Assembly (NCBI GenBank): GCA_964187785.1
Contig: OZ076417.1
Location: 20,336,001 to 20,400,000 of the forward strand
DNA: 64,000 nt
Reading direction: 5' to 3'
DNA from: Amphiscolops sp. MND2022
Taxonomy: Eukaryota
Position 1 is the stretch's first letter. Every line of letters starts with the position of its first letter. Shown one piece after another: positions 1-30,694 of the stretch. The position numbers were made by a program, and so were the translations under genes. The notes below the pieces were generated by a model, which worked only from the letters and a program-made list of their open reading frames with translations, had not been told where the DNA came from and did not search any database.

Positions 1-12
1 CTCATGCATGCA

Positions 13-208
13 CCCTAGTTTTGCGGAATCACAAACTTTGCAAAATTCGGCCTAAATTTTTACCAATTATGCATTGGTTACAAGAATCTTACAAGTTTGT
101 ACAAGAATCGCAAGTTTTGCAAGAATCTTGTAAGAGTTAGTGTCAAACAATGCATTTTCTCACGAGTTTTTGTAAGAATTTTGCAAAAGTTTATTTTTTC
201 AACTAGGG
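13..208. mobile_element. MITE-like element with CCCTAGTT terminal inverted repeats
   Basis: CCCTAGTT at 13-20 and AACTAGGG at 201-208, flanked by CATGCA on both sides (7-12, 209-214; candidate 6-bp TSD). Interior rich in TTGCAA/CAAGAATC. Duplicate at 4669-4848 and a related partial copy at 57294-~57430. Confidence 0.7.
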
Positions 209-556
209 CATGCAATGCCATGGCCATGGATGGGTCACACATGAACCATACACGCGCAATTTTTGCTATTCAATGGCTATTAAATGCTATAAAAAATCCT
301 TAAACGTAATAATGACATCTGCATATTATATCAATGTGCGGTGGAAGGAAAGATTTTTTCCCAACTTGATGCATACCCTAGCAACTGATTAAAATAATCT
401 CTGACATGTGTGAAAAACCAAAACTCAGTTGACGTCTTTCCAGTTGAAATGAAAAACTGTCGAGAGGAAAAAGATTAAGACATGTTTATACTATTGTACT
501 TGTTCGCTAAGTTTTATAATTTATACTTAATTATATGATAGGTCTTGTTAACATCC

Positions 557-1491
557 CTGATAACAATATAAAAGTAAATTATCTAATCGCAGCTTCATCT
601 GGAACTGTTTCAGAAACCCCCGCATCTCCCCGTAGTGTGCGATCTCCATCACCAGACAGATGGGCTCAGCGCGGGAAATGACACCCAGAAGTTTTATGAT
701 ATGTGGGTGTGAAAACTTCCTCATCGTCATCGCCTCCAGGAAGAAATGGTCCTGGGCGAAGTGCTCGACCTTGGTCAGCAGTTTGATTGCCACTTTCTTT
801 ACCTGGTGACCTTCGCGGTCAACTCGCAGGTCACCTATGAGGAACCATCCATCAGCAAACTTAAGGATTCCTTACATTCAAAAAAGTACAAATAAAATCA
901 AATAATTTCAACTGATACCTGGATCCTAATTCATGAAGCTTGCATGCAATTCCATGCATGGAACCATTTGATCGGATGAATTCCATGCGATTCCATGCAT
1001 GAAATCATGTCATTCTTGATTTCCATACGTTTTCATGCATGGAAACATATGATTCCATGCGATTCCATGCATGGAATCGAATATTGCGTTGGATCCAGGT
1101 ATAGTTTTTTCAAAGATTTTGGAGTTGTTGGTACTATTAGCGATTTGAATGGAATTGATAGCTTATTTTTTTTAGTTTGGAAAATAATGAAAAGAAATTT
1201 CCTTTCATCATTTTTTCAAACTACCAAGTTTTCACTGCAAACTGTATTTTTGTCCAGTACGTTCAAAAAATTTTCAAATTCTCGAAATTGACTGACACTG
1301 ATTGAAGCTTGGTCTATTTTTTTTCCGTGAAACTGATGAAACCAAATTATCTTTATAATCTGATTATATCCTTTCACCAAAATTTTTTCCTGATAATTCC
1401 TCATACCCTCGAAAACTTTGCCGAATTGGCCTTCGCCCAGTTCTTTGACAATGACCAAATTTTCACTGGGAATTTCAATGGATATTATTGA
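557..1491 (-). pseudogene. Partial duplicate of FAK-like tyrosine kinase exons (subdomains I-V)
   Basis: Exons ~1491-1407 (IEIPSENLVIVKELGEGQFGKVFEG) and 834-557 (DLRVDREGHQVKKVAIK...LLLYCYQ). The 5' part of the first exon is replaced by unrelated sequence. Any further exon would lie left of the window. Confidence 0.75.
918..1099. mobile_element. CATG-rich MITE in a kinase intron (duplicate at 5561-5742)
   Basis: CCTGGATCC...GGATCCAGG termini flanked by TA on both sides. Interior made of TTCCATGCATGGAA-like palindromic units. Confidence 0.7.
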
Positions 1492-2074
1492 CTTTTACAG
1501 TACTCATTGTTGACTTGTTTTGATGCCAATAATACCGGTCTAAGGGGCCTATTCTGGCTAATAAATCGCGGTGTAAAAGTGTGTTTAATGGCCTCAACAG
1601 GTTTCATTATTACATAATCATCCAATGCATCTAATATTAAAATAGCTTTACCTTTGTCCCGTTTCAAGATTCACATGTTGACTCGTGCCTCAGTGTGTGA
1701 TCACATATTTTGAATACCTTCACCCCAACAATAGTAATGTGAGGATTTCATAACTCTTCATAACGTGAATCTCAACTCTGATATATCTTTGTTGTATTGT
1801 ACCAAGAATGCCTTGATCAAACTGATGCTTTGATATAATTGTTGTTGAAGTCTAAATGCCACTCCAGGAATGTGGACCCGGAAAAGCACATGACATTTTT
1901 CCTCAACTTTGTTGACATATTGATGCTGAGGAATGTAACTATCATTCCAATGAGACTATATATACAAGAGGCTCTCATAGGAAGAACACAAATCTGTAAA
2001 CTGTTTTCTAGTTCAAACCGTTCAAACGTTACTTTTCCGAATAAAATGATTCAGATATTTACTATCGGATATTC

Positions 2075-2689
2075 TTGATGCCTACCACTAGAAAACAAAA
2101 AAAGAAGGACAGAAAATCGAGAGGATTAGAATTGCTCTCAGACATAGAAAACCTAGACATTATGTTGGAAGACAGACACTCTGAGAGAGAGGAAAGTGTA
2201 GATAGCAATCGGGCTAGAAGGCCTGAAAGTGCAAATAGCAATCTCTTTGAGAACGATGAAGAGAATTAATACTTGAATCCTAGAGAAATCAGATCTAGTA
2301 ACAATGCTGGTCTTGGCCAAAATTCGACAAGTGCGAACTCTAGTGCTGAGATCAACAGATTATCGAGTGAATTAATTTCTAGGATATCTAGGGAGATGGA
2401 TGAGATGATGAATAGTGTCAGTGTTCAGATTCAGAGGGCAATTAACAATACCATCAGTAGTCAGGTATTACCCCAAATTCAGAATGCCATCATGGCCGGA
2501 CCGGGACATATGACACAGAAAAGATGGAACGTTCCGGCTGAGAGACGGGAAACAAATACCGAAGTTCTGCGAAATGGAAAGGTCAAAAATAGTTTAAAAG
2601 ATGAGTTTGCCGAAAAGCGTCTTAATTATGAGCCCATCGGCAATGCTTACGACAAAACAATTTACAGAATCTATCAACTGATTTACTGA
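2075..2689 (+). pseudogene. Interrupted ORF (MPTTRKQKK...), probably a TE-derived gag/ORF1-like fragment
   Basis: ORFs 2075-2269 and 2273-2689 are in the same frame, separated by one TAA. Central predicted coiled coil (AEINRLSSELISRISREMDEMMNSVSVQIQRAI). No catalytic motif recognised. Confidence 0.4.
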
Positions 2690-3671
2690 TTTTCCTTGAA
2701 TGCAAACTTGCACACAAATGTTTCAAATTTTGGATTAGCTTAAAATTCATTTCAACCGCAGATGGTTCAACCTAGGAAGAGTCTAGTTTCGAAAGTAACA
2801 TAGAATTGTTCAGATAAGTGATATTTATAGACATAATGCAGCATGAAACCTGTGTAACTCATGTCAATACGTTTGCTAGCAAGATGGCGTTTTGCAAAAT
2901 GAACAAAGAGTTGCGAAATTGTTACAATTTAAGTAGTTTTTGATCAAAACATGAAACCTGAGTTCTGTGCAACTCTGTGAAAGAACCATTTAAATTTAAT
3001 GCATCTAATCCGGGATTGTTTACAAAAGTTGACTTTATGCAGCTAATGGTTTCGAAACATGCTCATAGAAATTATGTTCACACCAACAAGGAAGCAAAAA
3101 TAGCAAAATTTCTTTTCTAATTTCCCCAATTATAATTATAACCTGCGGAAATAGAGTTTCATGTCGGCTGAAATTTTTCTTGAAATGCGAAGTTTTACAA
3201 AGTGGCAGTTTTGACTCACAAGTTATGTAAGCAAGTTATATAAGTGAGTGAATGTACGTTTTTCAAATTAAAAATGTGAAAAGGGACCCTATGACAATTG
3301 CATAACGAAAAAACAAAAAAGTTGTTTCTGATATGATAAGTTCACATGAAACACAGAATCATGACAACTATGTAAAATTGTTTATATCAATTGATCTTCT
3401 ACTTGAAAAAAAAAATATTAATATTTGAGTCAGAAAAGAAAAAAATTTCAATGATAAAAAAGTCTTCGAATGTTCATTATACCATGCGTATTTTAAGCGT
3501 AAGAAAGCGTTCGCAGAGTTTTTTCTGTTATGTTCCTTCAATTTATCCAATTTATCTGCGTCTGAAATTATCTAACAAAATCCAATTCTTGCAGCTGAAT
3601 CACCGAGGTCTACATTTAGAATACGGTACAATTATTTAGAGAAATTTTACGACTTAATTGCCACATAAACA

Positions 3672-3817
3672 TAGTTATTTTGACTGAACGCTGCGAAATC
3701 ATGTCCTAAAATCTGCACCAAGCTGACAAAATTCTGTTTGTGTTAACACAAACAGAATTTTGTCAGCTTGGTGCAGATTTTAGGACATGATTTCGCAGCG
3801 TTCAGTCAAAATAACTA
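3672..3817. repeat. Perfect 146-bp palindrome (73-bp arms, no spacer)
   Basis: The left arm tagttattttgactgaacg...ctgtttgtgtt is the exact reverse complement of the right arm. The centre is GTT|AAC at 3744/3745. Confidence 0.97.
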
Positions 3818-4372
3818 GTTAACTTAGTCAAACTAGTTAACTAGTCAAAATAACAATGTCCAGGTACTAGTTATAAACGCCATATATGAGTCACCTGGTT
3901 ATAGGTGAAATACCTGTTATAATCTCTTCTGAGCTAATCATGTCCTCTCGGGACAGTTGGAAAAGAATAACCGTGGAATCAAAAGCACGTGATTCATAGG
4001 GATAGTTGTTTGTATTGCGCAATCTTTGGGGGCGCTTGTTTTGAAGACAAGACCACAGAGTCTAAAAGAAATCCCCACTTCTAAATTTCTTTCCAAATTT
4101 CCTCAGATGTTTTCCAAAATCTGCCAATTAACCCGGCGCCACCACTTCACAAAGAAGTCGGGATCAAATTAACCGACTATCAATTAGTCCGAACAAGAGT
4201 GTCAACAGTGTTTCATTGGTTGAAAGAAAACCGACGTCATGTGACCGAATGATTACGTCATTAATTTTTCACATCGGAAATGGTTCAACCAATCAAATAC
4301 ATGAAGTCAGAGTGCTTTATGAACTGTTGCTAGAAGTTTGTCTTTAAGGAATACCGATGGGCTAATTTTTTA

Positions 4373-6149
<1,777 letters not shown>

Positions 6150-12741: not shown

Positions 12742-12941
12742 NNNNNNNNNNNNNNNNNNNNNNNNNNNNNNNNNNNNNNNNNNNNNNNNNNNNNNNNNNN
12801 NNNNNNNNNNNNNNNNNNNNNNNNNNNNNNNNNNNNNNNNNNNNNNNNNNNNNNNNNNNNNNNNNNNNNNNNNNNNNNNNNNNNNNNNNNNNNNNNNNNN
12901 NNNNNNNNNNNNNNNNNNNNNNNNNNNNNNNNNNNNNNNNN
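12742..12941. other. Assembly gap (200 N)
   Basis: Run of N. Adjacency of the two flanks is not guaranteed. Confidence 1.
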
Positions 12942-13701
12942 TTCAAGGCCGGATATGCGGTCGGTACTTCTTCCTTAAGCACCGGTATGCAGTCCAACCC
13001 GGATATCAGGTAAAATTTATTTGAATAAATCGACTGCATATACCTCTTTGCGGTGCATGTGATGGCCACCGCACATTATCGACCGCATATCTTGCCAGGA
13101 AAACAAGTTTGAGTTAAAGTTAATTACATCAGATAAATCGTTGTGGAGGGCAAAAACTGGTATGCGACGTAAGTTTCGGCCACCGCACTCAAGGTACTGT
13201 TTCATGAACAATGTTTTTTATTGAACTAAAATTACCTCAATTAAAAAGAAATGTTGACTGCATATACTTATTTGCGGTGTATGTGATAGACACCGCACTT
13301 CCAGTTCTTTGAGTTATAGTGAATTTACTGGAAGATACTTTTTGAGGGCAAATAATTGTTTGCACTATGTGCCTGTCACCGCGTTCATGATACGGTCTCA
13401 GTTACAACGTATTTTTGAAATAAAGTTAATTTATTGAAAAACAAATGTCGACTGCATATACCTTTTTGCGGTGTATGTGATAGCCACCGCACTCAAATTG
13501 TTCTGAGTTACAAAGCATTATATTGATTTGAAATTAACTTTAATACAATCTTAAACGCGCAAATTTTGTATGAAACGTGTTTTGCCTTTTTCGGAAAAAC
13601 CTTTTTCAAAAAACCGTTGTTTTTTATACTGCAAATTTTTGCAAAACAAGCAATTTAAAATCAACCAATTTAAGACATCGACCGAAAAAATTGAGCTTAT
13701 T

Positions 13702-16700
13702 TTATCTTGGAAAGTAGTAAAAGAACTCACCTTTCTTTTCTCTAATAACTTGATCGTTATGTTTCTTCACGGCTTGGTTTAAAAGCGTCGTCTGAAGCAC
13801 TTTGATGCGTTCATTTGCTTCTTCTACTTCCCCTCTCGTGGAAACCGGGTTAAGTGTTGTTTCTTTCAATCGTTGGATTTCTTGAAAAAGTGCTTCTTTT
13901 TTGTGACATCGAGAAAAATGTCTTTGTGGCTTCGTAAACCAAGTCCCATCAGCACAGAGACCACATGGATAGCTTTTAGTTTTGTTTGTTCCCAGTCGAA
14001 GGATTTGAATTGCAGAAGCGTCGTATGCGTTAACAACACAATCACTGACATCAGGTACTTGAAGTGAGCTGTTAGGTGGCGAGGGAACGTTGAACAGTGT
14101 TGCGGAGGATGCAATGCTTGTTTCTGGCTCAATAGATAAATTATCTGAGGCCTCCGAAGCAATCAGCGACGGACATTTTAGCGGCTTTTCAGACTTGTTG
14201 ATGGCGGAAACCCTCTTTTTCCTCGAAGGTGAAACGGTCGTTTCTTCTTCTTGCTCATCTGATAGTTCCTCTGAACTTTCCACATCAGCCACTTCATCAA
14301 CTTGGAAATCAGCGTCCGAACCATCACTTGATGCATATGATTCCGTGTCACATTTTGAAGAACTCTGGCTATCGTTTTGCTGCTCTTCATCCTCTGCGTC
14401 ACTGCAAATTGTCTGGCTCTGGGGCACTAATGGTGTCGAGGATGTTCGAGGAAGAATGTCAGATGGAATACCTGAACACGGATGAGTTTGGTGTTTTGTT
14501 TTTTTTTGGATCAAGGAATGGAATGGGTATGAAAAACTTGTTTCTTTCTTTCAATACTTTTCACCAATGTTTTCAATGGACACTTTTGATTACCAACGTT
14601 TTGAAGAAAGATGGTAAAAATTGAGAATTCCAAATCTAGCTAAATGTTACTTAGATAATAAAGGTTTTCGGAACGTGTACTTCAAGAAACTGGCGTTTCA
14701 AAACTACAACAATTGTCTTTTCTTCAATGGGATTAAAATGGTTTCTGAATGGATTGTTGAAAACAATCAAGCTTCGATAAGCTCATCCCTGTTTCGGTTT
14801 CATCTGTGTTTCTGAGGTTTGGAGTTTGGAATTTGGTGTTGGAGGTTTGGAGTTGATTGGTGGTCCATGAGGGTGCGGCAAGTTTTTCCATACCTTCATT
14901 GACTTGGCTTGTTCCTCTGCAGGGAGTGGTGCAGGGTTGCGAAGTTTCTTCCTCGATAACACTGAGCCTTTTTGATTCTGTAGTTTGCGGTGTTAGATTA
15001 CCATCGGTCAAATGTTGATTTTCATCAGAGTCATCATCTTCATTCCATACTCCCCATTTTGTTTTTGTTCTCCCAGCAAACTTCGGAACAATTTGGACTC
15101 TTTTGCTAGTTATTGGTTTTCTCTGGACTTTTGTGTTTCCTTGCTGCTGCTTTGTTCGAGCTGCATTTCCTTTTATTGAAGTTGGAAGACGTTTTCTAGA
15201 CACACTAGGTGCCTCAGTAGCAGTATTTTCTTGTACTTCACAGTTGTCGTCAGCGTCCGAATTTTGGCTGCTCATCACCACTTCTGATTGGTTTGTAGTT
15301 TGACTTCGCTTGTTAAAAGAATCTGATTCAATCCGGACAGCTGATTGCAAAGAAATGACGTTAGAGGAAACACTACAACGAGCTGAGGTCTCACTGACGG
15401 TATCTGTGCTATTCGCAGAGGTCTCGTCCAAGAACCTGGTTGAAGATGTACTTGAAGTAGATGGTTGTGTAGATGTTCTACTGCTGCGTTTTGAGCTTCT
15501 CGTTGATACAGAGCGGGCCTCGTCATTTCCTTTAAACTTTCTTGCATAGATAGCCATGCCCCTCATTTTCTTCCGAACTGGTGCGAACAAGTCAACAAAC
15601 TGCTCCTCGTCTTCCTGCAACGCGTTATTGTCTTCCATTGGGACTAGATTTAAGTCAAGTGCTGGAGATTGTTTGAATGAGTCAGGGATTTCCACTCGAA
15701 AGGAACCATCGTTTGGAACGTTATGTAGAAACTGCCATCCACTAGCCGTCTCGCTCCAATTGCTTCGTGACTTCCAAGGCTGAAGGTTGTTTCCGTAGTT
15801 GTACCGCAGCTCGTCTCCTGTTAAGACAAAACGATTTATCCAAGCAGGCAAAGAAAAGTTCTTGCTGCTTGTCACTTTCCTGCCTTAGAGAACCCCCGAA
15901 AATAACGATGTTGTCCCAAATGATACCGTTTCAAATTTTACAAATTCAACTGAAGTAGGGATCCCGGGTCGACCTTAAGAAGCCCACCTCCTCCTTCTTT
16001 AGTTCGTTATTTTGAATATTTTGATGAACTGATTAAAAATTGTAAACTATCTGAAAAAACGTAGATTGAAAACGTACTCGAAAACTTGGAAACGTTACGG
16101 AGCCTTGCAGTTCAAATTACCATTTCGAAACATTGATGTTAATCAATTATAAAAGAGAAATCTAAAAAGGTGAATTTACAGTAAAGAAACTGAATAATTA
16201 TTGTAAAATTTGATAAAGTAAAATTGCTAAACGGTATAAACCAGGGGTGGGTAGAAACTAATTAATGCGGAATTATTCTGATAAATAATTTATTTTGACT
16301 GCCGCAAAATAGAATTTATTTATTTTTTCTAAACGAAAGAATGAATTCTTTATTTTGAGCGGATTCTTGCATAAAAATTATTTGTTTCTAAGGTGAATAG
16401 TAAGGAAATACTATTTTACCCATCCCTGGTATGAACTCACGAAACAATGACCATAATTTGTAATGGCTTACCTATGGAAATTTTGGAAACAGCCTTGAAC
16501 CAGAGGACACATGATGGCTCCCCATTCTCTTCAAAGGGATGCAAATGTGGTTCGCAGTTTGGTTTATGGAATGGATCGGTGTCATTTATGAAACGACCAA
16601 TACTTTCTTCCAACGACGTTCCATCAATAGTCCAATGTTTGTTCCTCCACTCAATGCCAAAAATTGCAGGGCCCACTTTATTGTCTTGGGAAAGACGCCC

Positions 16701-16871
16701 ACGATAATTTACAATAAAATCTCCTTTCTCGAATTCTTTGAGAACAAACACTCCCAATCCGATGGATTTGGAAACAATTTTGATTTCTAGCCAATTTGGA
16801 TCGCTGTTGGCAAATTCCTCTGCTAGATCGGTGGGTTTCTTTTGTCTCAAATTACGAGTTCTGGTTGTCAT
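13702..16871 (-). CDS. Spliced SET-domain (KMT5A/PR-Set7-like fold) protein with long acidic/Ser-rich linker and CxxC...H...H Zn-finger-like region; probably 3'-incomplete
   Basis: Exons 16871-16472, 15817-14894 and 14471-13731, all phase 1 with GT-AG. SET motifs GLGVF..EFEKGDFIVNYRG, IGRFIND, KPNC and, across the intron, G|DELRYNYG..PW. Exon 3 has CGLC...RHFSRCH...HNDQV and ends at a strong GTGAGT donor. Confidence 0.8.
16242..16428. mobile_element. hAT-type MITE in intron 1 of the SET gene
   Basis: CAGGGGTGGGTAGAA / TTTTACCCATCCCTG termini; 8-bp flanks GTATAAAC / GTATGAAC (7/8 TSD match). Confidence 0.75.
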
Positions 16872-17019
16872 CTGCAAAAAGAATAGTTTGTATTGCACCA
16901 TTGAAACCATCTTTCAAAATTGTTTATAGCTACAAACGTTTGTTTATAGCTACAAACGTTCTTCAGGGACTTGAGGAACATATTGGATTTCCAAATACCA
17001 AAATTACACAAACGAACAG

Positions 17020-17336
17020 CTGAAAACAGATTCGAAAATCCACAACATGAAAAGAGTTTATATTACCATGAAGTTTAGTTTGACCAATCTTTCAAACCAA
17101 CCAATTCGAATATCAAAACTTTCATTCTTCTCTGCCACCATCAATCTGATATCAGATATCTGATATCTTTATGGTTTGTTCCAAGATTTCCAGAGGCGCT
17201 ACTTTGAAAATATTTGATGGAGGCAGAAAAGAATCTGTTTTGATATTCGAATTGGTTGGGTTGAAAGATTATTCAAGTCAATTTCATGGTAATATAAAAA
17301 CTCTTTTTTGTTGAGGATTTTCGAATCTGTTTTCAG
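17020..17336. repeat. Fold-back (MITE-like) element with ~125-bp imperfect inverted arms
   Basis: ctgaaaacagattcgaaaatcc...ctgccaccatcaa is mirrored by ttgatggaggcag...ggattttcgaatctgttttcag. Confidence 0.8.
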
Positions 17337-18549
17337 GGACCACACTTAGTAAGGAGAAATCGCTTGAAATCACATTTAGTCAGGAGTACCCAGAAAACAT
17401 TGGACAAAAAATATTTGAAATCAAGCAACTGAAAATAATCTCATTTCGGACCAAAAAAATATTTGGTATTGATTTTCAACTAATCTGATTCATAAAAAAA
17501 TAAACTCGGTCAATAATGATCACTCAAGGAGAGCTTGGTAACTGAAAAGTTGGTGAAAATCAATGAATCCAGAGAAGTTTTAAAAGTTTGAAAGTCAAAT
17601 TTAAGAGTGACACTTACTTTCTGCTGATTGCGCTCGTCTGAATCGAGCGACCAAAATAAAAGTAAAGTGTAATTTATTGCACAGTATTTTTTACTGTAAA
17701 TGGTTGTTAAAGTTTGGTAGTTAAATGGTAGTTAATGTTAAATTACGGAAAGTTTAAAAGTTTGCAGAATGGAAACTCGAAAAAGCATGCAGTTTTTAAG
17801 CAATCAATTTTATTTGTTGAATCGATTTGACTGTCGCATTGAGAGACAACTGAGAAAGTGATTCCCGACTGACCGTCTGAAGTAATCAACCAATAGAATT
17901 CAAGAAACTTTGACGTCAGACCAACTCGGCTTTCCACTTGATGTGAACGACAAGTTACTGACCTCATATCTGATGACTTTCCGCTGCAACCTGCGTTTCA
18001 AACACAATTCGTTGACCAATCAGCGATCAGTTCCTCATTCGGTGGACAGATTCAACTTCGCGCTTTACATTAGCTAACTAGCTATATTAACTAGCTAACT
18101 GTTAGCTGAACTGAAGCACACTGTGAACATGCAGCATATAATGAAGCAAAGATTAGCTCATAAGCCGCAATGAGAGCTTGAAAGGACAGCATGTTCAAAC
18201 TGAGATGAAGAAGGAAAGTTGTTGAAAGTTGAGCGAATGAAAGTTGAATGAATGTTGGAAGAAAGAAAGTGATGTTCCCCATTTCCTGATATTACCATGC
18301 AGGGCTGTAAAAATATAAATACAGGATTTATTGTACTGGAGAAATCAGAATTGAAACTGACTTTCAAAGAGCAATGAGTAGTAATCAAAATGATGACTTT
18401 TTTTTATATCTATTGTTGCTTTAATTGCTTTAACTATTGGAAAAAATTAAGAACCATATAAAATTAACTTGAGACGAAAAGTGAGCATGAAAATTAGAAA
18501 ATGTAAATCAATAAATATTGGGAATAGTAAATGGAATAATAATGAGCAA

Positions 18550-19747
18550 TTAATATTGAGAATTTTGAAATTGCTCGAACTTCATCTTGAGAGCTTTTAA
18601 AGTTCCTTGTTTGGCTTCTGAGCAAACATCGCATTTGACATAGAAGAACCAATGTCTGGCAGAGCATAGAACATTCCGCTGTTTCTGATTCACTACTTTC
18701 GACACTGATTCATCGTCAATTTCGGGGATCCAAAACCGGCACACTTGTGTCAACTGATGGATAAAATCGTTGGATAGAAATTTCTGGTTGTTTCTGAAAA
18801 CAGAAAAACAAAAACCCAGACAAATATTGAAGCCAAAATAAAGTTTCCCTGAAGTCTAACGCATGTGGACAAGCTAAAATTTAAAATCCTCAAACGAATT
18901 TAGAACATCCCATTTCAAAATAAACAGATAAATCAATCCAATTTCTTGGTTTTAGTTTCAATTGTACACCAAAAACCCGATCCGAAAAAAGAAAAACAAA
19001 AACCCAGACAACAATTGAAGCCGAAATAAAAATTCCCTGAAGTCTAATGCATGTGGACAAGCTAAAAATTCAAATCTCAAATGAATTTAGTACATGCCCT
19101 TTCAAATTAAAGATGAATCAATCCAATTTTTTGTCTTTTATTTCATCTTGTACGTCAAAAACCAGATCAGAAGAAAAGAAAAACGAACACGGACCAACAT
19201 CGAGGTCAAAATAATGTGTCCTTGAAGTCGCTTGCCTGTGGACATTTGCATTTAGAAGCTCCCATTTCAAAATAATTTTGAATCACAAGCTGACTGGTTA
19301 ACTACGCAATTCAGAAAATTTAACCTGCGATAAACAGTTCGGGTAATTATCAGCACGTCTAATGAACAAGCATCAAAAAGCAATACAAAGTTAAAAGTAG
19401 TAGGAAACGAAGTAGTACTTGTATTCCTAGGTAAGACTGTCTTCCTTTCCAACACTTTGTACTACATATTGTCTCCTTTTTGAACCTTTCATTTTGATCT
19501 GTACCATTATCTCTGGTTCCAAGAGATCGTAATACAATTAAGAAATAGAGGAACTATACCAACAATGTGGAGACTTCACATGGGTGCTTCCGGAGTAAGT
19601 TCACACATACGTGTTTTGTACCTCGAACTCCGAACAACTGGATATTGGGTCCAAGTAGTTTTAAAAATAACTGCGGCTTAATAGCCAGCAAATTTAGTCA
19701 TTTTGGAGTAGTTATACTTCGAATCTATCTCCACAGACTGTTTGCAT
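18550..19747 (-). CDS. Predicted 4-exon gene of unknown function (173 aa)
   Basis: Hand-threaded exons 19747-19718, 19670-19560, 19461-19325 and 18793-18550. All introns are GT-AG with matching phases (0, 0, 2), total 522 nt. The last exon contains RHWFFYVKCDVC. No homology recognised. Confidence 0.45.
18800..19275. repeat. Degenerate tandem repeat, ~185-bp unit, ~2.5 copies
   Basis: gaaaaacaaaaacccagaca...ccctgaagtctaa.gcatgtggacaagctaaaa recurs at ~18800, ~18990 and, degraded, ~19175. Confidence 0.8.
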
Positions 19748-20177
19748 GTCTCTGATAGGTTTTTTTAACGTCGATTGAGTGCCTGACCGCACAACGGTGA
19801 TCCCATATCTGGGTTGGACTGCATATCGGTGTTTAAGGAAGAAGTATCGACCGCATATCTTGCCTTGCATACAAGCATACATACATACATATGTATGTAT
19901 CTAATCGTGTTATCTTGTAATCTCATATTTAATTCTACTTTCGTGCTGAGAGTGTATTTTTGAAAACTTGTCTTGCATAGTACAAAAATATCTTTTTATA
20001 CCCCAATATAGTCAAATTTTTCTTTTACTTTCACTCTACAAGCCGCACTACTTCCTTCTTCACAAGTTTGAAACATTTTTTATTGATTGCAATATGAAGT
20101 TTGAAACAGTTTCCAAAGCCCGTTCTTCACGTTTATTGAAAATGGAATAAACCCTTCGCTCCCAATGACTTCTTCAA

Positions 20178-23100
20178 ACTTTGTTCACTCGCCCATGTTT
20201 ATTCATAACTCATCGACAACTTAATTCCACCTTACTTCTCCAGCTCCAAAAGTTTTCAGTTTTGAATGCTCACGTTGACGAGCATCATAAATTTTTCTCA
20301 AGGCCGATGAAAGACGACTTAAATGTTTCATGTTCTTTAAAACCAAATATATTAAAACAACTTGGCAAACAATAACTTGAACGTAGCTGTCAGCCGCTCT
20401 GAACGAAACTTTTACCCTGACCTCTAAGAAACATTGCACCAATGTTAACCGAACATAGGAAGATAACACCATCTTAGGTTGTTCTCACACCTTAAGTGCA
20501 GTACAATTCTCAAGCACACTTTCTAGAACAAGTACAATCATTCAAATCATACATCTCATTAGGAAACATGAACCTCGCTCTTCCTTAGTGCAGATATAAA
20601 ATCTCAATTTTTTTTCAAACATTCCAGGTTGATTGTGATGTATGACCTCAAGTGTTTTCATAATTTCGAAATTTACTTGGACTCTTTGACCGAATAGTTT
20701 TGTCGTGAACTCCAAAATAAATTGAATCACAATCAAGAGTAATCAAACGCTGACTCCTTGTTTCTCTGATACAAAATCAGAGACGCCTGATTTAATTTCT
20801 CTTGAATGAAACGTTTCACTCTCCTTAATTACAATTGAACTCTACTCTTTTATCTTCAACAATTCAACGACTCCAGAAGGTAATCAACAATGAATTTCAA
20901 GTTTTCTAAAGTAAGATCCACATATTTGTTTCTTTGGCAACAAGTGCCCCATAAAAACTTGGATAGAAGGTTCCTCTAAGAGAGAAAGATTACAAACCCC
21001 CTTTTTCTTCAACGACAACCTTTATCGTCTTTATCATTTAGTTAACATCATTTGAACCCAATAACTTCACATCCAACATAATTCTCCCTTTTTAACAAAA
21101 CTCAACACAACGCAATCTTTCAATTTTAATAATGATTTTTTCTACGAGTGAGATTATTAAATGGTGTCCAGACCAGGATCTCCAACAGCTGCAAATCAAA
21201 CGGAAGCCATAAAGCCAACAGAAAACATCATTGAAGAACCGCAATTATTACGATTAAAATTGTCTAGAAGATCTCACAAGGGTTATATGCGACGGCTATT
21301 AACCCAAGCAAAAGAAATACTACAAAATAAAGATACAACACTGGAAGCCCTTGCAATACTTGATCAACAAATTAAATCGAAGAAAGAAGTTCTGTCAACG
21401 AAAAACGAAGAAATTGAAGCACTCACCTCATTGGAGAAATTGGAAGAAGAAATCGAAGAAACTATTACCTTCACAGAGGAAATCGACAATTGTGTTTTTG
21501 AACTAGACAAGATTGTAAACAGACTTTTAACAGCCAAAGATGAATCAACCCAGCAAAGAAGAAAACCGGATGCAATCGGTACCATCTAACAAACAAATAC
21601 AAGACTCCCCAAGATAGAGATGCCAACATTCAAAGAATATGTTTTGAGTTTCTTCTTACTGGGAATGGTTCGATGCCAACATTAATTCACTCACCACACT
21701 AAAATCAGTTCAAAAATTCAGTTACCTGAAGACAACTCTGGAAGGAGAACCGTCAACACTAATCGCCAACTTGGAAATGACAGCAGTAAACTACAACTCA
21801 TTGGAAGTTTTTAAGGACAGATACGGGGACAATCATCGCATCATCGAAGCACCCTACAGAAAACTACTTAACTTAGACCCAAAAAGAGGTAGATACACTC
21901 ACTTGAAGCAGTTTCCGACACCTTGGAGCTACACATAGCTACTCAGTAAGAGCTACTCATTAAAAGAGAACTACGTCCATACTAAATTATGGAACAAGAC
22001 AGAACCAAAAAAGTGAACTCAATGACAGAATTGCAATCCTATTCGTCAGCAGCCTTCTGCACCAACCAAACCCAAAGTTCCAAAAGAAAACACAGAGAAG
22101 GAAACGAAACGAAAAACTACACAGAACAAAAGAAACGAGCCACGAAGTGTTCTTTTAGCGGATCATCACATCGCGCCAGCGATTGCCTAAAATACGCCAA
22201 CATTAATGATCGCCTCGAAGTAGCCAAACATGAAGGACTATATTTCAATTGTCTGGGAAACACCAAGATGGATCGTCTTTTGCAACTCAATGCGAAAGAG
22301 GAACATGCCCAAAGTGCGGTGAAAAGCACCACATAGCACATCACAAGGAAGGCAACGGAGAAAAGAAGACAGAAAAACACAGAAAAAACCACAGAAATAC
22401 AATCAAACTTCACCTACGCCAATCAGAGCGGGATCCTAAAGATATTTATGGTAACGGTAGCTAACAGAATCAGAACAGTGGAAGCAGCAGTTCAACTGGA
22501 CGACGGATGCTCGGACACCTTTTGCACTCTCAACCTAGCACAGAAGCTTTAGCTACCTACAACATTACATCAACGACTTAGCATTTCACACTTTGGATCG
22601 GAAAATGAAACTTACAGATGTTACAACATTAGCCCCATCACGTTAAAGACAAATGAAGAAAATGTTCACCAGGAAGGAATTGTTGTACCCAATATGTGTA
22701 CATAGAAAATTCACCAGCCCTAACGATACAGAAAAGAAGAACAAGTGAAGGACAAGCCTATTGTGAAACCAGTCAACGAAGGAAGAGAAATCAACCTCCT
22801 CATCACACCAGACTTTTGCTACTCGGTGGTAACAGATGGAGTCATCCGACTAAACAATGGAACAGTCGCAGTAAAAACCAAAATTGCATATCTTGTCTGT
22901 CGTGGCCAACACAATGCTCCACCACAGATTGACAGTTACTTCACAAAAACACAAACAGTTCTCTTTGTTGCAGACAAAGAACACAAGATAATAAATTAGA
23001 CGACTTTCTACAGACTTCAGCCTCAGAACCCGAAGACTGGACAAAATACAGCATCTCTACCGTGGACACCCGAACATGAGAAATCAAAGATTCCGCAAAA

Positions 23101-26100
23101 TAGACACAAATCATATCACAGAGCAAGAAACATGATCGAGAAAACTTCAATCGATAAACAACTCCTCCAGAAGCTGAAGGATATTTTTGGAGATTACAAA
23201 CGATGTGGATTCAACAGCCTGACGACCAACTACAGATACAACGACGACAAGTGCAGCTATCTGCCCTGGCATGTCGTCTACAAAGATTACTCCATTCACA
23301 CCAAAGTTTGGATTGTCTTTGAGGACAGAGACTGTTGCAGAGACAAACTATTGTGATTGTCACTCAACGACTTTCTCTGGAAGGGACCCAATTTAACAAA
23401 CATCCTAGTTGAAATACTCCTCAAAATTCGACTACATTGGATTGCTTTGACAGTAGACATCGAAAAAGTTTTTCTCCAATGAGAATCAAAGAAGAAGACC
23501 GAAGATACTTGAGATTCTATTACCTACGAAACCCGGAAGACGAAGATCTAGGAACTGGACGACTAGCTGTCTACCATTTCAACAATATTGTTTTGGATCT
23601 CGAGCGTCTTCTTTCATCCTCGCAGCCGTTTTACAGCACCATCTACAGAAATGCAATATGGAACACTGGACATTGGAAGGAACATACTTGTGGACAATCT
23701 CGTCACAGGAACTGACGCAGAAGAACAAGCAAAAACCTATTTCAGAAGCACCAGGAAGATCATTCAAGAAGCATCACTGAACATTCGCGAAAGGACTTTG
23801 TTCAATCGCCCATGTTTGTTCATAACTCATTGACAACTTAATTCCACCTTACTTCTCCAGCTCCAAAAGTTTTCAGTTTTGAATGCTCACGTTGACGAGC
23901 ATCATAAATTTTTCTCAAGGCCGATGAAAGACGACTTAAATGGTTCATGTTCTTTAAAACCAAATATATTAAAACAAGTTGACAAACAATAACTTGAACG
24001 GAGCTGTCAGCCGCTCTGAACGAAACTTTTACCCTGACCTCTAAGAAACATTGCACCAATGTTAACCGAACATAGGAAGATAACACCATCTTAGGTTGTT
24101 CTCACACCTTAAGTGCAGTACAATTCTCAAGCACACTTTCTAGAACAAGTACAATCATTCAAATCATACATCTCATTAGGAAACATGAACCTCGCTCTTC
24201 CTTAGTGCAGATATAAAATCTCAATTTTCTTCAAACATTCCAGGTTGATTGTGATGTATGACCTCAAGTGTTTTCATAATTTCGAAATATACTTGGACTC
24301 TTTGACCGAATAGTTTTGTCGTGAACTCCAAAATAAATTGAATCACAATCATGAGTAATCAAACGCTGACTCCTTGTTTCTCTGATACAAAATCAAAGAC
24401 GCCTGATTTAATTTTTCTTGAATGAAACGTTTCACTCTCCTTAATTACAATTGAACTCTACTCTTTTATCTTCAACAATTCAACGACTCCAGAAGGTAAT
24501 CAACAATGAATTTCAAGTTTTCTAAAGTAAGATCCACATATTTGTTTCTTTGGCAACAAGTGCCCCATAAAAACTTGGATAGAAGGTTCCTCGAAGAGAG
24601 AAAGATTACAAACCCCCTTTTTCTTCAACGACAACCTTTATCGTCTTTATCATTTAGTTAACATCATTTGAACCCTATAACTTCACATCCAACATAATTC
24701 TCCCTTTTTAACAAAACTCAACACAACGCAATCTTTCAATTTTAATAATGATTTTTTCTACGAGTGAGATTATTAAATGGTGTCCAGACCAGGATCTCCA
24801 ACAGCTGCAAATCAAACGGAAGCCATAAAGCCAACAGAAAACATCATTGAAGAACCGCAATTATTACGATTAAAATTGTCTAGAAGATCTCACAAGGGTT
24901 ATATGCGACGGCTATTAACCCAAGCAATAGAAATACTACAAAATAAAGATACAACACTGGAAGCCCTTGCAATACTTGATCAACAAATTATATCGAAGAA
25001 AGAAGATCTGTCAACGAAAAACGAAGAAATTGAAGCACTCACCTCATTGGAGAAATTGGAAGAAGAAATCGAAGGAACTATTACCTTCACAGAGGAAATC
25101 GACAATTGTGTTTTTGAACTAGACAAGATTGTAAACAGACTTTTAACAGCCAAAGATGAATCAACCCAGCAAAGAAGAAAACCGGATGGAATCGGTACCA
25201 TCCAACAAACAAATACAAGACTCCCCAAGATAGAGATGCCAACATTCAAAGAATATGTTTTGAGTTTCTTCTTTCTGGGAATGGTTCGATGCCAACATTA
25301 ATTCACTCACCACACTAAAATCAGTTCAAAAATTCAGTTACCTGAAGACAACTCTGGAAGGAGAACCGTCAACACTAATCGCCAACTTGGAAATGACAGC
25401 AGTAAACTACAACTCATTGGAAGTTCTTAAGGACAGATACGGGGACAAACATCGCATCATCGAAGCACCCTACAGAAAACTACTTAACTTAGACCCAAAA
25501 AGAGGTAGATACACTCACCTGAAGCAGTTTCCGACACCTTGGAGCTACACATAGCTACTCAGTAAGAGCTACTCATTAAAAGAGAACTACGTCCATACTA
25601 AATTATGGAACAAGAAAGAACCAAAAAAGTGAACTCAATGACAGAATTGCAATCCTATTCGTCAGCAGCCTTCTGCACCAACCAAACCCAAAATTCCAAA
25701 AGAAAACACAGAAAAGGAAACGGAACGAAAAACTACACAGAACAAAAGAAACAAGCCACGAAGTGTTCTTTTAGCGGATCATCACATCGCGCCAGCGATT
25801 GCCTAAAATACGCCAACATTAATGATCGCCTCGAAGTAGCCAAACATGAAGGACTATATTTCAATTGTCTGGGAAACACCAAGATGGATCGTCTTTTGCA
25901 ACTCAATGCGAAAGAGGAACATGCCCAAAGTGCGGTGAAAAGCACCACATAGCACATCACAAAGAAGGCAACGGAGAAAAGAAGACAGAAGACACAGCAA
26001 AAACCACAGAAATACAATCAAACTTCACCTACGCCAATCGGAGCGGGATCCTAAAGATATTTATGGTAACGGTACCTAACGGAATCAGAACAGTGGAAGC

Positions 26101-27414
26101 AGCAGTTCAACTGGACGGCGGAAGCTCGGACACCTTTTGCACTCTCAACCTAGCACAGAAGCTTTAGCTACCTACAACATTACATCAACGACTTAGCCTT
26201 TCACACTTTGGATCGGAAAATGAAATTTACAGATGTTACAACATTCGCCCCATCACGTTAAAGACAAATGAAGAAAATGTTCACCAGGAAGGAATTGTTG
26301 TACCCAAGATGTGTACACAGAAAATTCACCAGCCCTAACGATACAGAAAAGAAGAACAAGTGAAGGACAAGCCTATTGTGGACAATAGTCAACGAAGGAA
26401 GAGAAATTAACCTCCTCATCACACCAGACTTTTGCTACTCGGTGGTAAAAGATGGAGTCATCCGACTAAACAATGGAACAGTCGCAGTAAAAACCAAAAT
26501 TGCATATCTTGTCTGTCGTGGCCAACACAATGCTCCACCACAGATTGACAGTTACTTCACAACAACACAAACAGTTCTCTTTGTTACAGACAAAGAACAC
26601 AAGATAATAAATTAGACGACTTTCTACAGACTTTAGCCTCAGAACCCGAAGACTGGACAAAATACAGCATCTCTACCGTGGACACCCGAACATGACAAAT
26701 CAAAGATTCCGCAAAATAGACACAAATCATTTCACAGAGCAAGAAACATGATCGAGAAAATTTCAATCGACAAACAACTCCTCCAGAAGCTGAAGGATAT
26801 TTTTGGAGATTACAAACGATGTGGATTCAACAGCCTGACGACCAACTACAGATACAACGACGACAAGTGCAGCTATCTGCCCTGGCATGTCGTCTACAAA
26901 GATAACTCCATTCACACCAAAGTTTGGATTGTCTTTGAGGACAGAGACTGTTGCAGAGACAAACTATTGTGATTGTCACTCAACGACTTTCTCTGGAAGG
27001 GACCCAATTTAACAAACATCCTAGTTGAAATACTCCTCAAATTTCGACTACATTGGATTGCTTTGACAGTAGACATCGAAAAAGTTTTTCTCCAATGAGA
27101 ATCAAAGAAGAAGACCGAAGATACTTGAGATTCTATTACCTACGCAACCCGGAAGACGAAGATCTAGGAACTGGACGACTAGCTGTCTACCATTTCAACA
27201 ATATTGTTTTGGATCTCGAGCGTCTTCTTTCATCCTCGCAGCCGTTTTACAGCACCATCTACAGAAATGCAATATGGAACACTGGACATTGGAAGGAACA
27301 TACTTGTGGACAACCTCGTCACAGGAACTGACGCAGAAGAACAAGCAAAAACCTATTTCAGAAGGACCAGGAAGATCATTCAAGAAGCATCACTGAACAT
27401 TCGCGAAAGGACTT
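20178..27414. repeat. Tandem segmental duplication, ~3616-bp unit (20178-23794 / 23795-27414)
   Basis: Near-identical copies including ~520 bp of flank, an LTR and the 5' half of a BEL element. Junction with ACTT microhomology at 23795-23798. Confidence 0.95.
20701..23794 (+). mobile_element. 3'-truncated copy of a BEL/Pao LTR retrotransposon (5' LTR, gag, protease, part of RT)
   Basis: LTR 20701-21161, PBS-like TGGTGTCC at 21162, gag RRSHKGYMRRLL / RLPKIEMPTF. Cut off inside RT by the duplication junction. Confidence 0.9.
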
Positions 27415-30400
27415 CAAACTACCCAAACCTAATGAATCACTTCACTACTCACACGTCCTGGGACAACAGTGGACCACCAAAGAAGATCAGTTATCACTGG
27501 AACCTTTCAAGCAACATTCAAAGCAGTTTGGACAAAAAGAAGAAAACTCTGTCAGTTCGCGACAAATTTCGACCCTTTTGGATGGACGGCCTCAGCAACA
27601 GTCAAAGCCAAACTCTTTATTAGAGACGTTTGGAAAGAAAATTGGACAAGGGACGAAGAACTACCGGCACAGAAGAAGAATGGAAGACAATTGCCGCCGA
27701 ATTAGCCAATGCAACAACATTCGTAATACCATACCAAGACACAAACCGAATACAGAGAAGAATTGCCTGGACATCTCCGTGGATAGCTCACTCTCAGCAT
27801 ACGCAGCAGTTGCCTACTTTAATGGGGAGTTTTACATGGCGAAGAACAGACTTAACACAGTATTACCAAAGACTATACCCGGACTTGAGTTGATGGCGAT
27901 GGCTCTCGGCTCACAGCTAGGAAACTGTTTACAACAGACTCTTCAACACCTGCCCATCGTGCTAGAAACAACATTCAGCAATTCACATGTTTGCCTGGCT
28001 AGGCTCACATCAACCAAGACACTGAAAACGTTTGTTCGCAACCGAGTGAACATGATCAACAACTACAAATGTACTTTCTTCTTCATTCCAACGGACCACA
28101 ACGAAGCCGACATTGCTACCCTCATAAGTCAGCTAAAAGAATCCCGACAACAACTTTGGTGGCACGGCCCATCACTTAGTGTCTTATAGCAGTTGAAGAC
28201 AACTCATTAAGACGTCTCGGAACCATTAGAAAACGCAGCTTTAATCCCTAGAAAGCAAGAAGAATGACGAGAGGGTAAACCCGAAGGTACCCTCGAAACA
28301 AAAACTCAACTCTATACAGTAAGTCAGGGTAGCCCCGAAGATACCCTTAAAACAGACCGCACTCAACGCAGTAAAAGGATCACAGCAATACAGGGTAAAC
28401 CCGAAGATGCCCTGTATGAAGACAACTTAGACCTACCTGAATCAACAGAAGAGATGACAAACCACTCAGGAACTTTTTGCATTTTCACAACACCCAAGTT
28501 CACAACACTCACGCGAGACAACAGTAACAGTAATTGACGTGACACGCCAATCTCATTTGAGAAAGTTGATTAGGACTAGCGCATGGACAGACAAACTTGA
28601 CAAACACCTCACAGCAGCAATAGCAACTCCATAGTCAAAAAAGAACCCGAATCACTCACTCCAAGGGAAGAACGTACGGCACTCTTTGACATCATTCGTC
28701 AATCACAAGGTACCATACACGCCGAAACGAAGGAACTACTACATCTTAGAAAGAAAAATCCCCCCATCAGAAGTCCCAGACATTTTAGGAATTTTTATTG
28801 ATCAACATGACATCATTCGATGCCGAGGACGTTGTTTGGGAAATAGCAAGGATCTGTCACTTGGAAAAAAAGAGCCCATAAAACGTACCCAGGATCATTT
28901 GGCAAAACAGATTGTGGAAGACTGCCACAAGAGAACTCCACACTCCGGAAAAAGAGCCACTTTATAACACTTACGGACAGTTTTGGATACCCAGAGGAAG
29001 AAGCTTCACCCAGAAGATTCTCAGGAACTGCAACACCTGCCGTCGCATACACAGCAAAACTTACAGATACACGGACCATCCCGCGCTACCGAGCTATCGA
29101 GTTAACTCAGCACCAACCTTCAGTGCTGTTGGGCACCTCGTTGTCAAATCCAACACTGCAGAACAATCCAAAGCCTACATTGCAGTTTTCGCCTGCTTCA
29201 TGAACGTGCAGTACACATGGAACTTGTGACAGATCTAACAGCTGAACTGTTTCTTCTCGCGTTGCGCCGTTTTTGAGCGGGAAAATCCGTTCCAGCAACA
29301 GTTGTATCGGATAATGCAACTTATTTTATTGCAGGAGAATCAGCAATCAAGACTGTTTTTGAAGACGATGCCTTTCAGCAACACTTCATCAAGCACCGAT
29401 TCAAATGGATACACATTCCCGGAAGATCACCAGCGTGGGGAGGATTGTACGAAAGACTTTTCAGTAATGTCACAAACATTTTGAAAAAAAATCTAGGAAA
29501 AGCCTTACTGACACAAACAGAACTCCACACAATCCTGAAAGAAACCGAAGCCACAGTCAACAACAGACCCCTGCCATACGTGGAAAGCGCCACAGCTACT
29601 ACATCACAAACAGCATTGACGCCGTCACATCTCATCATTGTACGAATCCTATCAATTACACCCCACCTTGAAGAACCTGGAGACAACATCATCGAGAAAG
29701 ACCTCGGACACAAGCAACCCAATCAAAGACTATTCTAATTGACACAACTACAGCGAAGTACTCGGAACAGACGGAAAACAGTGTATTCGAGTTTTGGAAG
29801 AGAACGCCAAGAAGCCAATAAATGGAAGACATCTGCAATAGCAGTCACGAAAGGAAATATAGCACTGGTCTACGGTGACACACCTCGCTCGACATGGAAA
29901 TCGGAAAGAACCGAAGAACTCTACAAAAGAAATGACGGACAAGAAGGATCGTTTCGAGTAAGAACACAAGGACGTGCTCTTTATCACCCGAGCACTTTAT
30001 GAATTGTACCCTCTCGAACGGACAATAATAGAAGAATCGAATACTGATGAAACTGCAGAACACCTTCGAGAAAGTAATACATCAGTAGTAGAAAAATCAG
30101 AAAACAAAAGTGGTCCAAATCTGAGCACTGGTTGCAGACCGAGGCGCAAAGCTTTTACTTAAGGTTTAAAATGCCTCAAGGATACTTTTGACGATAATGA
30201 TTTCAACGAAAAGGAATCTCTGCCCATGGGGAGTATGTTGTGAACTCCAAATTATGTTGACTCACAATTATGAGTAGTCAAACGCTGATTCATTGTTTCT
30301 CTAAATCCAAATCAAAGACGGCAGACTTTATTTCTTTTGAAGGAAACTTTTCACTCTCTATGATTACAATAGAAGTCTACTCTTTTATCTTCAACAATTC

Positions 30401-30694
30401 AACGACTCCAGAAAGGAATCTACAAGGAATTTCAAGTTTTCTAAAGTAAGGTCGACATATTTTTTCTTTGGCAACAAGTGCCACATAAGGACTTGGATAG
30501 AAGGTTCCTCGACGAGAGTAAGATTACAAACCCCCTTTTTCTTCAACGACAACCTTTATCATCTTTATCATATAGTTAACATCATTTGAAACACTATATA
30601 CTCTCATCCAACATAATTCCCCTTTTTATCAAAACTCAACTTAACGTTATATTTCAGTTATAGTAATTATTTTCTCGATAAGTGAGATAATAAA
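24317..30694 (+). mobile_element. Full-length but decayed BEL/Pao LTR retrotransposon
   Basis: LTRs 24317-24777 and 30236-~30694 (roughly 15% diverged in the first 80 bp, hand count), PBS at 24778, PPT GGGGAGTA at 30228-30235, AGTTT/AGATT flanks. Fragments in PR (LDGGSSDTF), RT (DIEK, VDN), RH (DSSLSAYAAVAY), INT (HSG, CRR, SDNA) order, with many frameshifts. Confidence 0.9.

Follow-up and report, generated by a model that had tools for sequence, protein, structure and literature searches.

An inverted-repeat-flanked SET gene in Amphiscolops sp. as the probable 5′ part of a Crypton-type transposon

The DNA analysed here (the window) is a stretch of 64,000 nucleotides from Amphiscolops sp. MND2022 (assembly GCA_964187785.1, contig OZ076417.1, positions 20,336,001–20,400,000). 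Positions 12944–19875 of the window hold a SET-domain gene and a second open reading frame (ORF) between the two arms of a long inverted repeat. An earlier reading, made from the sequence only, had taken these arms for the boundaries of a mobile, possibly non-autonomous element with no visible transposase. The explanation that we consider reasonably probable is that the segment represents about 7 kb from the 5′ side of a Crypton-type transposon of about 13 kb, the recombinase exons of which lie beyond an intronic left arm. The arms probably do not bound a complete element, as the left one is intronic and lies at an assembly gap, and sister copies run on past it into recombinase exons.

In the proposed arrangement a single multi-exon gene on the minus strand would encode a KMT5A-like SET domain, a Ser/Thr-rich linker, a CxxC..RH..H zinc finger and, at the C-terminus, a tyrosine recombinase. 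The right arm would be the real 5′ end of the element, set against a TG/CA-type microsatellite, and the left arm would be an inverted copy of that end, placed in the large intron between the zinc-finger and recombinase exons just before an (AATAT)n tract. The assembly would have broken at this tract, leaving a gap of Ns, and the recombinase half of the window copy would be on an unplaced contig or lost. Mobility may be Crypton-like, the recombinase excising the element as a circle that then integrates at or beside simple repeats.

Copies, ends and gene structure

A genome search with the ends and the interior placed the unit at further loci. It recurs at 91–96% identity at C13:0.17 Mb, twice on C1100, at C8:54.06 Mb and at C9:63.35 Mb; right-end pieces are present on C3 and C1005 and a more distant copy on C1, and the family has at least 8 copies in this identity range. 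The two C1100 copies are one block duplication, 99.8% identical over at least 19.7 kb. Both arms are retained in five copies, with differing flanks beyond the termini, and the window-type SET gene is multi-copy and always found within the same unit. The 63-bp repeat sequence itself has only about 13 genomic occurrences, at the end of a family copy in every case examined. Recurrence of the unit at other loci with the same ends places it in a mobile Crypton-like (tyrosine-recombinase) family, and the mobility proposed by the sequence-only reading is thereby borne out. In the divergent C1 copy (C1:83.99 Mb), a FLYWCH-like zinc-finger ORF (L021:2903-3280, minus strand) lies directly downstream of a recombinase remnant.

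The inverted repeat was found as described earlier, with arms of 63 nt at 12944–13006 (plus strand) and 19805–19867 that are complementary at 57 of 63 positions (90%) and 6798 nt apart. Its length reaches 72–74 nt in sister copies that have no gap. No second long inverted repeat surrounds the locus within positions 1–40000, the other pair there being an unrelated palindrome at 3672–3817 (perfect, 73 + 73 nt, spacer-free and 100% complementary). The right arm continues to 19875 on the minus strand, where it ends ...CCTTGCATACAAG and where homology with the sister copies stops. This terminus is cut at the same base against five differing outer flanks, those of the window, C8, C13 (identical to that of C1100), C3 and C1005. 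Directly beyond it the window has a (CATA)n/(TATG)n microsatellite (19876–19903), and TG/CA-type simple repeats occupy this position in four of the five independent flanks.

The outer limit of the left arm is unreadable in the window because a 200-N assembly gap (12742–12941) adjoins it, the arm starting 2 nt beyond the gap. Outside this arm C1100 and C9:63.35 Mb have different DNA, and the window and C13 have Ns. The two ends of the element are unlike each other, the true 5′ end reading CTTGTATGCAAGG... and the 3′ end ...AACAGGGGTATTT before an (ATT)n tract, which adjoins the 3′ end in both of the two cases. Terminal inverted repeats at both true ends together with a target-site duplication, as in terminal-inverted-repeat DNA transposons and miniature inverted-repeat transposable elements (MITEs), were not found: the left arm is internal in C1100 and the readable junctions have no target-site duplication. 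The short direct terminal repeats that Cryptons have were not identified at the ends either. The ORF lists of the unit contain neither a reverse transcriptase nor a DDE transposase, as is expected of a Crypton.

The SET domain is encoded on the minus strand by two exons. The first (16472–16910, probable ATG at 16871) contains the GLG and GRFINDT motifs and is followed by a predicted intron (15818–16471) with GTAAGC...AACAG ends. Removal of this canonical GT-AG intron joins ...SKISIG to DELRYNYG, so that all three motifs are present, as the earlier reading had claimed for GxG, RFIND and the terminal ELRYNY. The second exon (14733–15817) completes the domain and continues into a Ser/Thr-rich linker; its ORF runs to a stop at 14733, and the predicted exon end at 14894 uses the donor AG|GTATGG, the sole strong one there and in the required phase. 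The SET ORF is open in the window copy. Pfam recognizes the SET domain above its cut-off (E=2.4e-5; 25.1 bits against 22.4) and nothing else among the three large ORFs of the unit. The best solved relatives of the SET exon are KMT5A/SETD8 (E about 5e-6), and the SET domains of proteins in which SET is fused to a recombinase match it with 31% identity (E=5e-14). Its NH motif reads ND, as in the whole of this fusion family.

The second ORF forms an exon (13731–14471, minus strand) that encodes an acidic stretch as well as a CxxC..RH..H zinc finger. It has no ATG and ends in the consensus donor AAAG|GTGAGT, in phase 1. A profile was built from the recombinase ORF of a neighbouring transposon family (referred to as ‘A’) and searched against all public protein representatives. 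The window ORF (14550–13705) matches positions 81–248 of the profile of long relatives (E=1e-11), with the rest of the window unmatched, which makes the second gene the N-terminal quarter of the recombinase protein. Of the two spliced genes on one strand that had been described, the SET gene with its GT-AG intron stands, and the second behaves instead as an internal exon. The resulting model, predicted from the nucleotide sequence, runs on the minus strand through 16910–16472, 15817–14894 and 14471–13731 and then enters a large intron that holds the left arm. No RNA run containing the stretch turned up; the four runs aligned to it are genomic and differ from it by indels only, each matching other copies.

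The recombinase half

Profile searching across the 64 kb of the window detected neither a recombinase nor a transposase, in agreement with the earlier statement that no transposase is visible. The recombinase part of the window copy would be unseen because the assembly gap begins exactly at the left repeat. The C1100 copy is readable across this point: on one strand the left arm is followed by about 550 bp of (AATAT)n, a 185-bp satellite array and an exon that matches profile positions 245–550. This exon lies 4.8 kb downstream of the zinc-finger exon, on the same strand, and has a strong phase-1 acceptor, cttgtgtttcag|GA; the predicted join of the zinc-finger and recombinase exons reads ...IREKK-G-ILVPVRL.... 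Further C1100 exons extend to profile position 824, and the copy measures about 13.2 kb from its terminus to the (ATT)n tract beyond the recombinase half. Downstream of its zinc-finger exon C8 likewise carries a recombinase C-terminus of the same lineage, which shares 93% identity with that of C1100; this divergence equals that of the rest of the unit. Same-lineage sister copies contain the recombinase motifs RRGGE, GKQGK and LGH..IHGKYYR. A relative at 70% identity (L035, an ENA contig) is colinear with the window element and matches profile positions 246–790 about 90 bp past the zinc finger; L035 has no terminal or intronic inverted repeat and no flanking microsatellites.

Four orphan recombinase halves were found, three at contig ends (C1362, C62 and C504) and one behind an N gap (C1884), and C1362 starts with an AATAT-type simple repeat. 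N gaps also lie at the left arms of the window and C13 copies. The assembly therefore breaks at the AATAT-type simple repeat, behind the left arms of these two copies and before the recombinase halves. We read the right arm as the true 5′ end because the zinc-finger exon lacks an ATG but has a donor, because sister copies possess recombinase exons, and because orphan halves lie at assembly breaks. A circular permutation of the element was also considered and rejected, as the 3′ end of a recombinase half does not occur among the five flanks seen at the 5′ terminus.

The search with the ‘A’ profile returned 2994 relatives. Among 44 long relatives 13 have an N-terminal SET domain, two a weak Phage_integrase match and one DUF3504, and the domain order is SET, a CxxC..RH..H..HN..V zinc-finger region and recombinase; the named relatives are ‘uncharacterized’ proteins of teleosts and poison-dart frogs. 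The recombinase exons of the window lineage match the same family profile as ‘A’. An AlphaFold2 model of the C-terminal domain of the ‘A’ recombinase, from a 41-sequence alignment, has a predicted local distance difference test (pLDDT) score of 80 and best matches XerH, XerA, the Tn1549 integrase, lambda Int and Cre; the C-terminal domain of the family is thus predicted to fold as a tyrosine recombinase. A model from a shallow alignment (pLDDT 41) was unusable. Solved structures searched with an alignment profile of the recombinase domain gave no match, nor did Pfam on the ‘A’ recombinase ORF, and word-based homologue searches returned only same-species ENA proteins. The association of SET and the CxxC..RH..H..HN..V region with a tyrosine recombinase, put forward in the earlier reading, is borne out by the profile match of the second ORF, by the SET domain in 13 of the 44 relatives and by the modelled fold.

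Selection and competing explanations

Selection was compared between copies as the ratio of non-synonymous to synonymous substitution rates (dN/dS). The SET exon gives 0.08–0.25 (window, C8, C13 and C1100) and the first recombinase exon 0.09–0.57, with most pairs at 0.1–0.3; the latter exon is open in four of five compared copies, C1362 having an 8-nt gap. Both exons thus show purifying selection between copies, and the lineage accordingly spread at a time when both catalytic modules mattered. The Ser/Thr-rich linker is near neutral (0.5–2.0). The C9:63.35 Mb copy contains stops and frameshifts.

Several observations weigh against the assignment of the window segment to a larger Crypton-type element. 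The sequence left of the window gap is unrelated to the element, so that the recombinase half of this particular copy is undemonstrated, and in C13 a different Crypton-like element lies across the gap. The simple repeats differ, being of TG type at the 5′ end, AATAT in the intron and ATT at the 3′ end, which is not predicted by simple insertion into one microsatellite. All splice joins are predictions; if the second were wrong, the SET ORF would end at the stop at 14733 and the zinc-finger exon would need another upstream exon. The acidic/zinc-finger exon is near neutral (dN/dS 0.5–1.5). Among the copies read none is fully intact: in C1100 SET is interrupted by a stop at Q23 and the recombinase frame shifts at the catalytic KYYR; C8 is without the middle exon. 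Finally, the left arm of C9:63.35 Mb is fused directly to a reverse-transcriptase fragment of a long interspersed nuclear element (LINE), without microsatellite or recombinase exons. At least one copy really ends at the left arm, so that breakage and joining of DNA precisely at the arm must have happened at least once. This copy was unusable as a test of precise insertion into the LINE, as other sequence takes the place of its right end from window position 19684 and the contig then stops.

The C9 junction keeps alive a rather unlikely alternative, in which the 6.9-kb segment is a self-contained, non-autonomous derivative that has lost the recombinase but retains a SET gene under selection, with relatives moving it in trans through its two inverted ends. 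Such a unit would agree with the presence of both arms in five copies, with the exact stop at the arm against the LINE fragment, with purifying selection on the SET exon and none on the zinc-finger exon, and with the subterminal repetition of the terminal motif, as is seen at transposon ends. However, two of the five two-armed copies are the one segmental duplication, which continues into recombinase exons, and in two others the arm adjoins an assembly gap. The consensus donor of the zinc-finger exon matches the recombinase exon in phase, no target-site duplication was found, and inverted sites are not the kind that a tyrosine recombinase requires for excision. The same junction sustains a further idea, to which we give only a small chance: the intronic inverted terminus could be a working second recombination site, at which the element's own recombinase flips the SET/zinc-finger module with respect to the recombinase exons, or releases or joins DNA. 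If so, the second site would yield SET-only sub-elements like the LINE-joined C9 copy, and a built-in DNA switch would govern whether the chromatin enzyme is fused to the recombinase.

Passive duplication is a different matter, and it seems very improbable that the copies are segmental duplications of one decayed Crypton remnant, with the inverted repeat formed by chance remnants of short repeats and without a role in mobility. The 99.8% block duplication on C1100 and the ‘A’ element shared by C13 and C1100 as right-end neighbour would suit such an origin, but the right terminus is cut at one base against five flanks and the left against two, the coding exons are under purifying selection between copies, and the 63-bp sequence, with its 13 or so occurrences, lies at the ends of family copies in all cases examined. 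Least credible of all, to the point of being nearly dismissed, is a domesticated KMT5A-like host gene that merely happens to lie between two repeat fragments. The intact ORF and intron of the window copy and its low dN/dS would suit a host gene; against this, the SET gene is multi-copy and always in the same unit, is closer to the SET domains of the fusion proteins than to solved KMT5A by the E values given above, and carries the ND variant of that family.

Relation to known systems and neighbouring repeats

Cryptons are tyrosine-recombinase DNA transposons, described as without terminal inverted repeats and with single-domain recombinase genes, from which the DUF3504/QRICH1/ZMYM proteins are derived (PMC3212892, Kojima and Jurka, 2011). 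The window family resembles these classical Cryptons in being mobile DNA with only a tyrosine recombinase, and its profile also reaches DUF3504/QRICH1/ZMYM proteins; it differs by the addition of SET and a zinc finger and by its length of about 13 kb. CryptonV families are recorded as microsatellite-specific in the description given in PMC8869645, which cites Kapitonov and Jurka (2012, Repbase Reports 12:2034). Compared with that description, the window element would likewise be a tyrosine-recombinase DNA transposon; it belongs to the same broad protein family, shows no reverse transcriptase and has ends against microsatellites, but its simple repeats differ at the two ends and an inverted copy of the 5′ end lies in an intron.

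The SET domain itself shares the GxG and ELxYxY motifs with KMT5A, its best solved relative. KMT5A (SETD8, PR-Set7) is the H4K20 monomethyltransferase. The window domain differs from it in being only weakly similar, in having ND for NH and in being transposon-borne, the comparison being one of sequence. By analogy, it would methylate a histone lysine (KMT5A-like, H4K20) near the site of action of the recombinase. SETMAR is a primate host gene, present as a single copy, that captured a DDE transposase of the mariner type and so joined it to a SET domain. It resembles the window family in combining SET and a DNA-transposition enzyme in one protein; in the window family, by contrast, the fused gene belongs to the transposon itself and its enzyme is a tyrosine recombinase. 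The same domain order occurs in teleost and frog proteins (e.g. XP_048861681.1, XP_077422404.1 and XP_077121903.1) with an N-terminal SET domain, 31% identical to that of the window, and a C-terminal recombinase. These are single long ORFs or gene models of 950–1250 amino acids, whereas the window copy is incomplete and split by large introns.

The SET–zinc-finger–recombinase architecture is widespread, fish and frog genomes with proteins annotated ‘uncharacterized’ included, and the window element is a new, decayed member of this SET-recombinase family. No paper describing a SET-Crypton fusion was found in the searchable literature, a search that does not extend to Repbase entries. Many near-identical SET-containing open frames of about 1384 amino acids occur elsewhere in the genome (e.g. 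C2:43712285, C3:44961825 and C9:14240499) and are probably a young single-ORF SET-recombinase family.

A histone-modifying domain that is borne by a transposon and fused to its mobility enzyme could mark chromatin at landing or residence sites, which is relevant to the ways in which mobile DNA escapes silencing or turns it to use. What the window copy adds is evidence of selection on the SET and recombinase exons, together with the inverted copy of the terminus, unusual in being internal. It also carries a practical warning: with the assembly interrupted at a microsatellite, an incomplete copy came to resemble a bounded, transposase-less element.

The ‘A’ family is a separate Crypton-like family with hundreds of recombinase copies (L013:1-4769 in C13, L011:1-4932 in C1100 and loci L023–L034). 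Its elements exceed 20 kb and contain a 57-bp internal tandem array and a 168-amino-acid SET exon that precedes the recombinase ORF by about 8.6 kb. In C13 and C1100 the ‘A’ 3′ end, ...GTGCGGATTCTCACACA(TG)n, lies directly against the 5′ terminus of the window-type element; in C13 ‘A’ copies flank that element on both sides, inverted to each other. A giant terminal-inverted-repeat element, suggested by the long inverted flanks in C13, was rejected, since the flanks are two copies of the separate ‘A’ family, each with its (TG)n-tipped 3′ end against the window-type element.

Within the element, the start of the large intron (13007–13730) holds repeats of about 194 bp that carry the terminal motif (C/G)GAC(C/T)GCATAT. 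The window contains this motif nine times, where 1.7 occurrences would be expected; seven lie within the element, six of them in its left 520 bp or in the right arm. A satellite with a unit of 185–188 bp (about 2.5 units) lies at 18793–19261 and forms longer arrays in C1100 and in L035. The upstream region of the element also contains a nested palindromic MITE-like insert of 317 bp (17020–17336), with three inverted-repeat pairs; in the genomic runs its word depth (bin 17200–17399) is about 100 times that of its neighbours, which marks it as a very high-copy repeat. Directly to the right of the element, window positions 20178–27000 (and 30144–30590) form a tandem duplication with a 3.6-kb unit, 97–99% identity and strong AT and GC skew. 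Towards the left end of the window, positions 11–6126 contain a direct duplication of 4.64 kb at 98–99% identity.

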